From the sequence record OU343167.1: a DNA stretch of 64,000 nt. The stretch is one strand, 5' to 3'. Numbering within the stretch: position 1 is the stretch's first letter; each line of letters begins with the position of its first letter. The notes below the pieces were generated by a model. That model worked only from the letters and a program-made list of their open reading frames with translations, was not told the origin of the DNA and ran no database searches. This document shows, piece after piece, positions 48,806 through 57,850 of this stretch. The translations under genes were made by a program, and so were the position numbers.

Positions 48806-48883
48806 TGGTGCCGTCAGAGGGATTCGAACCCGATCGACCTACTGATTACAAGTCAGTTGCTCTACCTGCTGAGCTATAACGGC
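48806..48883 (-). tRNA. tRNA-Thr(TGT) with 2-nt insertion at T-stem
   Basis: GCCGTTA/TGACGGC acceptor, ACTGA-CT TGT AA-TCAGT, TTCGAAT T-loop, encoded CCA; 78 nt; GA(TC)GGG versus CCCTC. Confidence 0.9.
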
Positions 48884-48949
48884 GAAATTTGAATTGAGTA
48901 CTGGAATCTACATCACTGAATACTCTCGTATACTATTAGACACGAAGTA

Positions 48950-50518
48950 TTATTTTATTTCGTATTCGACTACGGGTGTTGTTTTGGATACATCACCACC
49001 AAATCGATAGACTCCATCGGATACAACTAACATCTCTTCATACGAAGAAATAGCTGGGAAAGTATCTCCGATTAGTTCTGGCTCTTTATTAAGTTGCACC
49101 AAAGCTAATCGTGTTCCGGAGTTATTCGTCACATAGATGTTATTACCGAATATGATTCCTCTATACGTCGAATATTTGTTGGCAGGCGCATTCAAAGGAA
49201 TGACTTCAGTTGTACTAAAATCAGAACTAATCTTTACGTAGTCCGTTGGCGAGATGTTTGTCCCACCTATTGTTAATCTACCTTGAGATGCAACGATAAC
49301 TAATTCACCATTATCGTTAAATCCTAAATTATGATGCCATAATTCAATTGGTAGAACATCAGCAATCATGCCGATTTCATATGTCGTAAGGTTAACTGTT
49401 ATAATGTTCTTATGGATTTTATCACTGCGCCCAGAGAAACCACCAACAATGTACAGTATATCGTCTTTAACTATACTAGCTGTACGTTCGATGTAATATG
49501 CATCGACTAAACCTGGAATAGCAGCTAGCTTTTTAGTTTCCCATGTGTCTGTAGCTATCGTGTAAATATAAATAGTCGGACCAGTAGACAATGGGTTACC
49601 ATGCAAAATCAACTTACCATTATTGTAAACCATATTGGTTGTAGTTGTCTCGCCTTGGAACGGAACTGTAGATGGTAACTTGGTCCATGTTTTAGTATCT
49701 CGGTCTAACCGATGTAAGTCGGACATGAAAGTAGTAGGTCCTGTTGTATATCCACAGGCCATGTAAATATCGTTGTTATCCAAATCATACGCGAGTACTG
49801 GCATCCCACGTTGCGGCGGTGGATTTACAGTCGACAATACAGAGGTAATACCTTTAAGTTCCTTTGGCGGAATATATTCAAGTACCGGTCGCCATCCACG
49901 ATAACTAGTAGCTTCTGTTGGCGGATGACCATCGTAAATATAAAGGCCATTCTTTGCCTGAGGATGAGTTGTCGATGGTGAAAACTGTAGGTAATTACCA
50001 TTGGTATTTCTATTAGCCGCCCAGTTATAACTTCCGTTTCCGGCGCCTATAAGTTGTTCATCTGTGTACTTTGCCCAACTTCCTTTAGTTGTAACATTGC
50101 CAAAAATATCCCACAATTCAGAACCTTCATTACCTTGAGTAGTGATATCCGAATAAGGATTTACTCCAGCATTCATTAGACGAACTTTAAACATATTCCC
50201 ATCGATTACAATAACTTTACTACCATCTATTAAACCAGCCTCGTCAAGTTGGTTTGGACTAATGGAATGGAGAATAGCTGTCTTCGAATAATAAAGAATA
50301 ACATTATTTCTAGATACTTTAATCCAACCAGCATCTGTATTTATAGTACCAATGGAGTCAAGCTCAACAAGTGTTCTTAACTGAGGGTAAGTTATAAACT
50401 TGTCGCTTGTCAACTCACCATACAGACCAAGTGTCGAATCACCTTGTTCAAAGGTAGATGGACCCGGTAGTTTATTTCCTGTAGCCTTAATGAGCGCAGA
50501 CAATAATGATTCGAACAT
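48950..50518 (-). CDS. virion-family domain fused to Kelch-like beta-propeller
   Basis: MFESLL start; GDSTLGLYGEL..FKVRLM..GWRPVLE virion-family domain; C-terminal LYIVGG / IIFGNN repeats. Confidence 0.8.
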   Translation of the reverse strand: MFESLLSALIKATGNKLPGPSTFEQGDSTLGLYGELTSDKFITYPQLRTLVELDSIGTINTDAGWIKVSRNNVILYYSKTAILHSISPNQLDEAGLIDGSKVIVIDGNMFKVRLMNAGVNPYSDITTQGNEGSELWDIFGNVTTKGSWAKYTDEQLIGAGNGSYNWAANRNTNGNYLQFSPSTTHPQAKNGLYIYDGHPPTEATSYRGWRPVLEYIPPKELKGITSVLSTVNPPPQRGMPVLAYDLDNNDIYMACGYTTGPTTFMSDLHRLDRDTKTWTKLPSTVPFQGETTTTNMVYNNGKLILHGNPLSTGPTIYIYTIATDTWETKKLAAIPGLVDAYYIERTASIVKDDILYIVGGFSGRSDKIHKNIITVNLTTYEIGMIADVLPIELWHHNLGFNDNGELVIVASQGRLTIGGTNISPTDYVKISSDFSTTEVIPLNAPANKYSTYRGIIFGNNIYVTNNSGTRLALVQLNKEPELIGDTFPAISSYEEMLVVSDGVYRFGGDVSKTTPVVEYEIK

Positions 50519-50682
50519 AATTTTATCCATTGAAAAGTGACTGTTTACAGAGGGGTGGCTGTATAGAACTTCACGTTCCTACTCCCTTTCCGTCTAAGGC
50601 CTCCCCATTATAGGTACTTACCAAAAGACTAAATCATACAATTTGCAACATAAAGCCCGCCTTTCGGCAGGCCTTATTAAAA

Positions 50683-50768
50683 TGGTAGGAGCAGAGGGAC
50701 TCGAACCCACAGTGCCTTACGACGGCTGGACCTAAACCAGCTGGCTATACCAATTCGCCTATGCTCCC
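50683..50768 (-). tRNA. tRNA-Leu(TAG)
   Basis: GCTGG-TT TAG GT-CCAGC, long variable arm, TTCGAGT, CCA. Confidence 0.95.
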
Positions 50769-50793
50769 ATGTAAAATAGCGCTTAACGCTAAT

Positions 50794-50827
50794 TCTTACA
50801 TATAATCACTATACCAGTATTTCTTTT
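50794..50827 (-). repeat. 34-bp Kelch-to-tRNA junction repeat, copy 1
   Basis: TCTTACATA-N8-ATACCAGTATTTCTTTT (+ strand); second copy at 53704-53737. Confidence 0.85.
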
Positions 50828-56458: not shown

Positions 56459-56492
56459 CAGTCGCTTGCTCTACCGACTGAGCTATCGCGGA
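56459..56492 (-). pseudogene. 5' half of disrupted canonical tRNA-Asn
   Basis: TCCGCGA-TA-GCTC-AGTCGGTA-GAGC-A-AGCGA-CT-G: positions 1-34 of a proteobacterial-type tRNA-Asn. Confidence 0.88.
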
Positions 56493-56641
56493 AGAATTAC
56501 TAACAACTTCTTTCTTGTAGAAAAATCACAAGTAACTGAATTACAGTATTTCACTACATATTATTACAATCTGAGTATTATTTATTTTTTATGACATTAT
56601 GTAAATAACGTGTAGTTAACCTTATTATAAATATTATTATT

Positions 56642-57649
56642 TTAATCAATGGCTAATGGTGCTAGTTTTACCTGATAGATACCCGATAACAATTGGCTTT
56701 TTAACATATATGCTCCACCACCAACTGGCATTTTAGATCCACCTGCAATGATCATGCTATTATCTGGACCTTTGGCTATAGATGAAATATTAAGGAATCC
56801 AATACCTAGTTCAAATGGTTCAGCCCATTTCCGGCGCCTAATATTAAAACGCTGTGCAAACATTTTAGTTACACCGCCGACATCAACTGCATTAAGGTAA
56901 TTAAAATATTCCCCATCTACATAACCATTACCTTGCCATATTGTTGCTTTGTCAGCAGGTATTATTAGCCATGGTGTTAGTTCCCATACAAGTGTAGTAA
57001 CATTGTATCTATAGACTTCTAAGTTTGGTATGTTCTTAGTATTATCCCAGCCACCAAAATGGTAGAAATAACCATTATAATAAAATAATTGTTGACCTGA
57101 CCTAGGTCCACCGCTATAGGCTTGACCGCCGAGCCAGTTCTTAGTCGATGGTTTTAATCGCATGGCGTTTGTACCAACTGGATTAACACACATAATAAGA
57201 TCATTGCCATCAGACGCTGACGCAGTTCCCCATAATGCACCAGGACCACTATAACGCTCAACGCGACTACCTGTGCTTATATCAAAATGTTGTATAAAGT
57301 TAGAAGTACCTGTACCCCCATCACCTGCTGCGTTCCATCCAGTAATACCACCATAAACAATAAAGTTATTTTTATGTAATGTACCAAATCCAAGTGATAC
57401 ACCCGGTAAAAATGTACCAGATGCTGTTGCGCTTATCTCTGCAAATGGGTTTATAGTGAACCGTCTGAAAACAGTTGCTGCTGATTGTCCTTCCGTATGA
57501 TGTCCGGATCCAACATATAACGTATTTCCATCTACGTACGACATCGTACCTGCCAATGCTACCGGTAGGTCACCTAATTTTATAATTTCACTAAATCCAA
57601 CCAAGGGTGTTTCATCGCCTAAACCTGATGATAATAGTAATTCAAACAT
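56642..57649 (-). CDS. Kelch-repeat beta-propeller protein
   Basis: LYVGSG, FIVYGG, FYHFGGW..YRYNVTTLVW, MIIAGG; MFELLL start. Confidence 0.88.
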   Translation of the reverse strand: MFELLLSSGLGDETPLVGFSEIIKLGDLPVALAGTMSYVDGNTLYVGSGHHTEGQSAATVFRRFTINPFAEISATASGTFLPGVSLGFGTLHKNNFIVYGGITGWNAAGDGGTGTSNFIQHFDISTGSRVERYSGPGALWGTASASDGNDLIMCVNPVGTNAMRLKPSTKNWLGGQAYSGGPRSGQQLFYYNGYFYHFGGWDNTKNIPNLEVYRYNVTTLVWELTPWLIIPADKATIWQGNGYVDGEYFNYLNAVDVGGVTKMFAQRFNIRRRKWAEPFELGIGFLNISSIAKGPDNSMIIAGGSKMPVGGGAYMLKSQLLSGIYQVKLAPLAID

Positions 57650-57726
57650 GAGTGTGCTCTCAAGTAAATCATTTTAGATCATAGGATAACCTTTGCGGCT
57701 CAGATATTTATTTTATTATAATAGAC

Positions 57727-57764
57727 AGCATAATACCTCCCTTAAATAGGGGAGGCATTATGCT
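57727..57764. terminator. Palindromic terminator family copy
   Basis: GCATAATACCTCCC..GGGAGGCATTATGC. Confidence 0.8.
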
Positions 57765-57773
57765 TTATTAATT

Positions 57774-57850
57774 TGGTGGGTCCAGCAGGACTTGAACCTG
57801 CGACCAAGCGATTATGAGTCGCCTGCTCTAACCAACTGAGCTATAGACCC
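57774..57850 (-). tRNA. tRNA-Ile2(CAT, lysidine type)
   Basis: GGCGA-CT CAT AA-TCGCT arm and body closely match enterobacterial tRNA-Ile2 rather than tRNA-Met; CCA encoded. Confidence 0.85.

Follow-up and report, generated by a model that had tools for sequence, protein, structure and literature searches.

A family of Kelch-propeller genes paired with tRNA genes in a phiKZ-like Pseudomonas phage, and the probable exchange of these putative attachment genes

We analysed a 64,000-nucleotide stretch of DNA (the window), whose bases 48800-57900 match Pseudomonas phage vB_PaeM_phiLBG22 (OU343167.1, 302.6 kb) at 100% identity, and studied a minus-strand locus with a tRNA gene behind each of four genes for Kelch propeller proteins, here named K1-K4. 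It forms the tRNA cluster of this phage, a jumbo phage of the phiKZ-like group. Our results indicate that it holds an expanded family of Kelch virion proteins, and that its conserved edges and tRNA genes probably act as homology arms for the exchange of propeller genes, a reading to which we assign a probability of about 60%. We observed the layout of the locus, the paralogy of its genes, the promoter identity of its repeats through their match to a mapped phiKZ transcript start, the replacement of whole alleles, and the presence or absence of genes together with the bounds of these differences. In our view the locus is no new system but a variable region for host attachment, of a general kind already known.

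The closest relatives of phiLBG22 are PA1C, phiHQ, BRkr, PS119XW, HHBS36_1 and HPP-Temi, and phiKZ matched the region only in part, with ~85% identity. tRNA genes were detected with ARAGORN and Rfam, protein domains with Pfam at its curated cut-offs, and protein families with PHROG. All genes of the locus lie on the minus strand, as do the signals assigned to them below, and the coding strand switches near 46 kb.

Kelch proteins, their tRNA genes and adsorption

An earlier note on this DNA had described four divergent Kelch genes alternating with tRNA genes, and our searches bore out both the Kelch identity and the fourfold alternation. K1 (56642-57649, 335 amino acids; phrog_19623, 'virion structural protein') scored 24.6 bits against Pfam Kelch_6, slightly below the cut-off of 25.3, and was homologous to the N-terminal half of K2. 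By blastp, K1 was 90.7% identical to phiKZ gp298 over 335/335 residues; the two proteins are of equal length and are alike in leader and flanking genes (gp299 to gp300). K1 is therefore the orthologue of gp298, and K2-K4, at 22-29% identity to K1, are paralogues only. PHROG places each of the four proteins in families labelled 'virion structural protein'. No further Kelch homologue was found in the 64-kb window, and tblastn of the whole phiLBG22 record gave only 2-3 matching places.

K2 (53736-55592, 618 amino acids) scored 103 bits against Pfam Kelch. Its residues 1-324 aligned with K1 (blastp, E ~1e-29) and its residues 328-618 with K3 (E ~1e-18), so that K2, with a K1-like N-terminal and a K3-like C-terminal half, is a double propeller. 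We then used structure prediction, a check that the earlier note had proposed. The AlphaFold (AF2) model of K2 was all-beta with two domains (predicted local distance difference test score, pLDDT, 70; predicted template-modelling score, pTM, 0.74), and Foldseek matched it to six-bladed Kelch domains in the PDB, including LZTR1 (9mez; E 8e-18, target TM 0.81) and the Kelch domains of ESP, KLHDC and Keap1 (target TM ~0.8). The model points to a six-bladed propeller for the C-terminal domain, with lower confidence for the N-terminal domain. K3 (50827-51765, 312 amino acids; phrog_16120) is a canonical six-repeat Kelch protein (Pfam Kelch_1, 153 bits).

K4 (48950-50530; 522 amino acids from an MFESLL start at 50518) joins an N-terminal domain common to other jumbo-phage virion proteins to Kelch repeats, one of which scored above the cut-off (Kelch_6, 33.2 bits against 25.3; phrog_16120, 1062, 21620 and 3589). 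Its structure model was unusable (pLDDT 43), and a search of 5.8 billion proteins returned only 4 homologues. A start four codons upstream (50519-50530) is possible for the K4 open reading frame (ORF); relatives annotate the MFESLL start. All four proteins start with MFExLL, with M1, F2, E3, L5, L6 and G9 invariant in the four-sequence alignment, and this shared N-terminal motif speaks for 50518, the downstream start.

The tRNA genes reported by the earlier note were all recovered by ARAGORN and Rfam. K1 is followed by a tRNA-Asn (GTT) of 87 nt with a long variable arm (56361-56447; Rfam tRNA 54.2 bits; a cloverleaf fold with an extra arm), which is the sole complete tRNA-Asn of the window. 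K2 is followed by tRNA-Tyr (GTA; 53601-53689), K3 by tRNA-Leu (TAG; 50683-50768) and K4 by tRNA-Thr (TGT; 48806-48883). Upstream of K1 stands a tRNA with a CAT anticodon (57774-57850; Rfam tRNA 72.7 bits). ARAGORN and Rfam, which report only the anticodon, call it Met; it is not initiator-like, its positions 1 and 72 being paired. ATA codons are enriched 3-fold in the Kelch genes, and the record of phage Churi lists a tRNA-Ile within the stretch that matches this region. The CAT tRNA is possibly Ile2, the label given to it by the earlier note.

The function of this protein family has been addressed in phiKZ. A preprint reported gp298 as a low-abundance virion protein that is dispensable on PAO1 and needed for adsorption to one clinical and one soil isolate; a gp298 transposon mutant failed to adsorb to two wild P. 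aeruginosa strains (bioRxiv 10.1101/2025.11.23.690004). The same preprint placed orf298 away from the tail genes, amid non-essential genes, and predicted an N-acetylneuraminate-epimerase-like domain in gp298. The host-interaction role suggested by the earlier note is supported in this way for K1 through its orthologue, and by their paralogy with K1, K2-K4 may act in attachment too. The ratio of nonsynonymous to synonymous substitution rates (dN/dS) was 0.02-0.12 for all four genes (window versus phiHQ), and K1-K4 are therefore maintained proteins. Diversifying selection by point mutation was rejected on the same values, obtained within allele classes.

Alternatively, K2-K4 might be enzymes, or internal or decorative virion proteins, whose variation is unrelated to host range. 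Weak Pfam matches to the NANM family among the Kelch proteins, together with the epimerase-like domain predicted in gp298, would fit this; so would the Foldseek matches, which were to generic Kelch domains and to no phage receptor-binding protein, and the placement of these families by PHROG under 'head and packaging'. We nevertheless consider it distinctly unlikely, given the adsorption defect of the gp298 mutant, the N-terminal motif and leader that the paralogues share with K1, and the replacement of whole alleles under purifying selection, which is the usual pattern of receptor-binding proteins.

Promoters, leaders and terminators at the unit edges

The earlier note had drawn attention to a 34-bp repeat beginning at Kelch stop codons and to a leader shared by two genes. 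Both are present, the repeat at 50794-50827 and 53704-53737 and the leader at 55597-55633 and 57654-57691, with 0 matches to either in shuffled sequence, the patterns having been drawn from the same data on which the shuffle test ran. Neither is a dedicated recombination site, the two being promoters and a 5' untranslated region (5'UTR).

The two copies of the repeat are identical at 30/34 positions (88%). Read on the minus strand, the repeat consists of an A-rich run, TACT, 13 bases and TATG. This motif occurs four times in the 64 kb, always on the minus strand within the locus (56584-56557, 53736-53709, 52680-52653 and 50826-50799), versus 0.68 in shuffles. As a general promoter of the window it was rejected, being confined to the Kelch/tRNA locus. 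The strict 34-bp form follows only K2 and K3; K1 is followed by a looser copy (56557-56584), of which phiKZ has an identical copy (6871-6844 of its locus, L005), and the copy after K4 is degenerate.

In the phiKZ tRNA cluster, the motif precedes nearly every tRNA or tRNA pair. One copy there ends at record position 270596, 1 nt from the 5' end of a published minus-strand transcript (270595-270485) established by ONT-cappable-seq and northern blots (PMC10914365). Differential RNA-seq of phiKZ had defined a promoter class with TACT ~22 nt upstream of the start and an A-rich repeat before it, and had tied start sites to the phage tRNAs (PMC8244752). Because the motif matches both this promoter class and the mapped transcript start, we assign the junction repeat as a phiKZ-type phage promoter for the downstream tRNA: tRNA-Tyr for the copy at 53704-53737 (motif proper 53709-53736) and tRNA-Leu(TAG) for that at 50794-50827 (motif proper 50799-50826). 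The fourth motif copy (52653-52680) lies amid a block of small ORFs (51826-53565, including a 187-residue member of phrog_26055) with no tRNA downstream, and its conservation extends to PA1C, phiHQ, BRkr, PS119XW and HPP-Temi. Either the small ORFs or an unannotated RNA may be expressed from it.

The leader comprises a TATG motif, a 5'UTR of ~30 nt and the first codons. In the window, the TATG late-type motif and 5'UTR of K1 span 57650-57691, and a looser copy precedes K2 at 55593-55633. The non-virion polymerase requires T-3ATG+1 at its late promoters (PMC7598289), and phiKZ 5'UTRs of 31-40 nt have been reported (PMC8244752). The leader is a late-type promoter with its 5'UTR, whose length of ~30 nt agrees with the phiKZ values. 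It is near-identical before window K1, phiKZ gp298, phiHQ K1 and two of the three K2 alleles described below (B and C), less well matched before K2 allele A and K3, and K4 is without it. Its layout is also recognisable before PhiPA3 gp360, in a different genus, and in IMG/VR its pattern occurred in one contig only. 

Each unit is closed by a GC-rich hairpin with TTATG immediately behind it (at 57764, 55667, 53588, 51817 and 50671). The terminator-like hairpin at 57727-57764 lies 3' of the CAT tRNA and upstream of the K1 leader; that at 55649-55667 is followed by TTTTATG; that at 53569-53588, followed by TTTATG, ends the K2/tRNA-Tyr unit; that at 51766-51817 includes overlapping TATG motifs and the K3 5'UTR; and that at 50647-50671 is again followed by TTTATG. 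GC-rich tetraloop hairpins with an immediate TTATG also occur at ~15 sites of the window on both strands (for example 60007-59990 and 13288-13314). These elements combine a terminator with a late promoter and serve as the general punctuation of the genome. No terminator was found between the stop codon of K2, K3 or K4 and the next tRNA, and the tRNA is therefore in the 3' part of the Kelch transcript in addition to having its own promoter. A scan for sigma-70 promoters gave 31 sites, fewer than the 37.3 in shuffles, and the motifs of the locus fit phage-polymerase promoter classes rather than sigma-70.

The order of a unit is terminator hairpin, TATG late-type promoter, conserved 5'UTR, MFExLL Kelch ORF, TACT..TATG promoter, tRNA and terminator. 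Given this order and the second promoter, the Kelch gene and the tRNA would form separate but nested transcription units.

Variation and exchange among relatives

We compared eight genomes in detail, and found that Kelch gene content differs among relatives, as the earlier note had anticipated. PhiLBG22, PA1C, phiHQ and BRkr carry four Kelch genes in the same order. PS119XW carries three, being without K1 and without the tRNA-Asn/HNH endonuclease block, and its K2 lies directly behind the CAT tRNA with a K1-type upstream region. In Koomba, two single-propeller genes stand side by side in tandem, the leading one being 94% identical to the N-terminal half of PS119XW K2, and a single gene is present in HPP-Temi (K2) and in phiKZ (K1). 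PhiPA3 has one double-propeller gene (gp360), with tRNAs following it, and in Noxifer a Kelch domain is found in a structural gene far from any tRNA. Strict pairing of Kelch genes with tRNAs fails in Koomba, whose tandem pair has no intervening tRNA, and in Noxifer. HPP-Temi is without K3 and K4, and these differences are bounded by tRNA-Leu(TAG) and tRNA-Thr, the former being 98.9% identical in the two phages compared. A 657-nt ORF (L001 9854-10510), located at the point between window positions 55632 and 55638, is present in PA1C, BRkr and HPP-Temi and not in the window or phiHQ.

The K2 slot, between conserved flanks, holds three alleles that are not alignable as DNA and whose proteins are 22-30% identical. 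The window, PA1C and phiHQ carry allele A, BRkr, HPP-Temi and HHBS36_1 carry allele B, and PS119XW carries allele C. Allele type does not track the backbone. Over 47177-53735, BRkr and the window are 97.6% identical, yet BRkr carries allele B, and its allele B is 99.5% identical to that of HPP-Temi, whereas the flanks of this pair are only 73-87% identical. The near-identical tract consists of tRNA-Tyr, the promoter and the K2 ORF only, extending from within ~20 nt of the tRNA-Tyr 3' end to 5 nt upstream of the K2 start codon. This tract marks one recent exchange of a single unit, with its ends in both conserved arms. PhiHQ, in turn, is a mosaic of PS119XW-like, window-like and phiKZ-like segments; its K1 is 98% identical to that of phiKZ and its K2 99.5% identical to that of the window. 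We do not claim a phiHQ crossover within the promoter, as the informative sites (window versus PS119XW) were too few and their pattern mixed.

These data bear on a simpler history, in which an ancestral unit of Kelch gene, promoter and class-II tRNA was duplicated in tandem and diverged long ago, and present differences are deletions, not exchange. The paralogy of the K2 C-terminal half with K3, the 88% identity of the promoters downstream of K2 and K3, the 72% identity of tRNA-Tyr and tRNA-Leu(TAG), the most alike pair of the cluster, and the double-propeller gene already present in PhiPA3 all agree with old duplication. Deletions alone are insufficient, however, to produce a 99.5% identical allele B in phages with far more divergent flanks, or a phiHQ with a phiKZ-like K1 and a window-like K2, and the gene trees of the slots conflict with the backbone in the sample of eight. 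We consider duplication without exchange very unlikely.

In the reading that we prefer, the units would be independent expression cassettes with coding parts that can vary. Selection would keep the regulatory ends and the tRNAs, not the propeller ORFs, and the edges would therefore serve as homology arms between co-infecting relatives. Ordinary homologous recombination would replace, add or remove whole propeller genes: replacement through two crossovers in the short conserved arms, and loss or gain of a unit through crossovers between repeated leaders within one genome. The outcome would be a variable set of attachment proteins. That the arms are preferred crossover sites, and that tRNA-lodged HNH endonucleases supply breaks stimulating the exchange, we infer.

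Several points weigh against this reading. The window/phiHQ tract of 98-100% identity (~52200 to ~56850) ends in the small ORFs and inside K1, not at unit edges, and exchange is therefore not confined to the anchors. As tRNAs and promoters are conserved anyway, alignments of non-homologous alleles end there regardless of the crossover site. The Koomba genes stand in tandem without a tRNA, the identity of K2-K4 to K1 is low, the adsorption role has been reported for gp298 alone and by a preprint alone, and the eight genomes are a small sample. The modular cassette swapping proposed by the earlier note is partly supported: it agrees with the K2 alleles, the presence or absence of K1, K3 and K4 and the BRkr/HPP-Temi tract, but in its strict form, with exchange only at tRNA and junction anchors, it is contradicted by the window/phiHQ tract.

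Part of this evidence could also be explained by a neutral, hyperplastic region: a dispensable genome end that gathers accessory genes, where the neighbourhood of tRNAs reflects harmless gaps with a promoter and terminator, and generic recombination has no preference for edges. The window/phiHQ tract ends would then be expected, and the locus does hold small ORFs, the 657-nt ORF that comes and goes, and HNH genes. The clustering of orf298 with non-essential genes (bioRxiv 10.1101/2025.11.23.690004), the genome-wide occurrence of hairpin-plus-TTATG elements and the Kelch genes of Noxifer and Koomba without an adjacent tRNA favour it as well. It is harder to reconcile with the tRNA directly behind 4/4 Kelch genes, and behind PhiPA3 gp360 too, with a BRkr/HPP-Temi tract that fits one unit almost to the base, and with a leader conserved in nucleotides across alleles of 22-30% protein identity. 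We hold a neutral region to be possible, though rather unlikely.

HNH endonuclease genes, island composition and known systems

Two predicted HNH endonuclease genes lie in the locus, one resembling phiKZ gp296 (55722-56279; Pfam HNH_3 41.2 bits; phrog_15471) and one at 48167-48730; both scored 41-42 bits against HNH_3 (cut-off 24.8), and the second has ~68% DNA identity to the first over 412 bp. The first gene is part of an insertion of ~0.77 kb that splits a canonical tRNA-Asn once (outer bounds of the remnant 55677-56492; 94-95% identity to the intact tRNA-Asn of Koomba). The insertion also holds the 87-nt long-arm tRNA-Asn(GTT), whose anticodon is that of the split gene. An intact 76-nt tRNA-Asn is found in Koomba (L008 6633-6708) and an intact copy also in an IMG/VR contig (L007), and the split gene has one additional small deletion in the window lineage. 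PhiKZ has the 0.77-kb insertion too, and the flanks there match those of Koomba at 99.5% and 97.8% identity. It retains in addition one intact tRNA-Asn copy of identical sequence, an argument for a wider HNH recognition site or an inactive enzyme.

A comparable element was found in HPP-Temi (L006 3425-4035), where a single break in a canonical tRNA-Thr holds an HNH gene and, behind it, a long-arm tRNA-Thr(TGT) of 87 nt and a second, weaker tRNA-like sequence; the 3' part of the old tRNA-Thr is lost. The HNH gene at 48167-48730 occupies the place of tRNA-Asp in PA1C, phiHQ and PS119XW, and the window and BRkr are without tRNA-Asp. The predicted HNH genes either interrupt tRNA genes or take their place, and in two cases bring along a long-variable-arm tRNA of the same anticodon. 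Rfam detected no intron family at E-values up to 1 in the window locus and up to 10 in phiKZ and HPP-Temi. A group I intron in the tRNA genes was rejected, as there was no Rfam match at the three loci and the flanking pieces are decaying, with lineage-specific substitutions and one small deletion. Long-variable-arm tRNAs (84-94 nt) with Asn, Lys, Thr, Arg and Met anticodons are frequent in phage tRNA arrays of IMG/VR (L011-L125); there were 66 in the 115 loci, only 4 of them near a homologue of this HNH.

It is conceivable that these elements drive the whole region as a host-range island: the HNH enzyme would break a tRNA gene, its own long-arm tRNA would take over decoding, repair of the break would drag along a Kelch allele and tRNA variants, and the AT-rich codon usage of the island would be served by its own tRNAs. 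As the element brings a tRNA of the same anticodon, that decoding capacity would not be lost. In the minus-strand island (46127-59981), GC content at third codon positions (GC3) is 0.24-0.38 versus 0.40-0.60 elsewhere, and TTA, ACA, ATA, CCA and CTA, the A-ending codons read by the island's own tRNAs, are used within their codon families at 2-6 times the rate of the rest of the window. AGA is equally enriched with no tRNA for it in the island, and the link between codon usage and tRNAs is therefore suggestive only. Codon matching to specific tRNAs was rejected, the enrichment being mainly low GC3. We regard the HNH-driven island as doubtful.

No Pfam or PHROG function was found for the small ORFs or the 657-nt ORF, apart from the phrog_26055 assignment of the 187-residue product. 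The 250-residue ORF at 59229-59981, annotated in PA1C as virion structural protein, weakly matched families of phiKZ internal head proteins and has a hairpin-plus-TTTATG element in front of it.

PhiKZ-like jumbo phages are therapy candidates against Pseudomonas aeruginosa, and their host-range determinants are poorly known. If K1-K4 do attach, gene number and allele type would provide a genomic marker of strain coverage, and host-range tables exist for several of these phages, allowing comparison. The locus also illustrates clearly, beyond the T4 group, how tRNA genes and regulatory signals can frame exchangeable genes. The HNH-plus-replacement-tRNA elements are the part likeliest to surprise a specialist: beside introns and inteins, they would be a third means by which a homing endonuclease can settle in a useful gene and leave its function intact.

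Compared with known systems, the adsorption role of the family and the use of regulatory cassettes as recombination arms are already known, and what is new is that the family has expanded fourfold and includes double-propeller and fusion forms, that one slot has three alleles, that each gene is paired with a tRNA, and that the repeats are promoters. The closest protein is phiKZ gp298, orthologous to K1 at 90.7% identity, equal in length and with leader and neighbours in common; phiKZ has this one gene, whereas in phiLBG22 there are four, all of them paired with a tRNA; one encodes a double propeller, and in one the propeller is fused to a further virion-protein domain. In the PeSL cassettes of T4-type phages (PMC2839356, PMC4122927), short promoter and stem-loop elements flank non-essential genes of hyperplastic regions, and recombination shuffles whole genes. 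The hairpin-plus-TATG elements and TACT..TATG promoters that bound each phiLBG22 unit resemble them, but PeSL promoters are sigma-70-like and early, whereas the phiLBG22 motifs are those of phage RNA polymerases and the tRNAs are part of the arms. The gp38 adhesins of the T4 superfamily (PMC3157838) are alike in that variation of host-specificity proteins comes from whole modules being replaced between conserved flanks; in phiLBG22, however, the protein folds as a Kelch propeller rather than a fibre tip, and the genes lie in a tRNA cluster away from the tail genes.

For the tRNAs, the PARIS effector AriB cuts Asn, Lys and Thr tRNAs (PMC12409363), and T5 carries tRNA variants against PARIS (PMC12409363, PMC11464382). 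The long-arm Asn, Lys and Thr tRNAs common in phage arrays recall this system, and a counter-defence role of the phiLBG22 tRNAs would be a lead from the literature only. For the HNH-tRNA elements, the nearest precedent is T4 SegB (PMC2330249), a free-standing homing endonuclease in a tRNA cluster, whose recognition of a tRNA sequence carries the adjoining tRNA region over into co-infecting relatives. The phiLBG22 HNH genes likewise interrupt tRNA genes or stand in their stead, and relatives have 'empty' sites. SegB, however, is a GIY-YIG enzyme encoded between tRNA genes, whereas here the gene of a predicted HNH enzyme splits the tRNA gene and twice brings a long-arm tRNA of the same anticodon.

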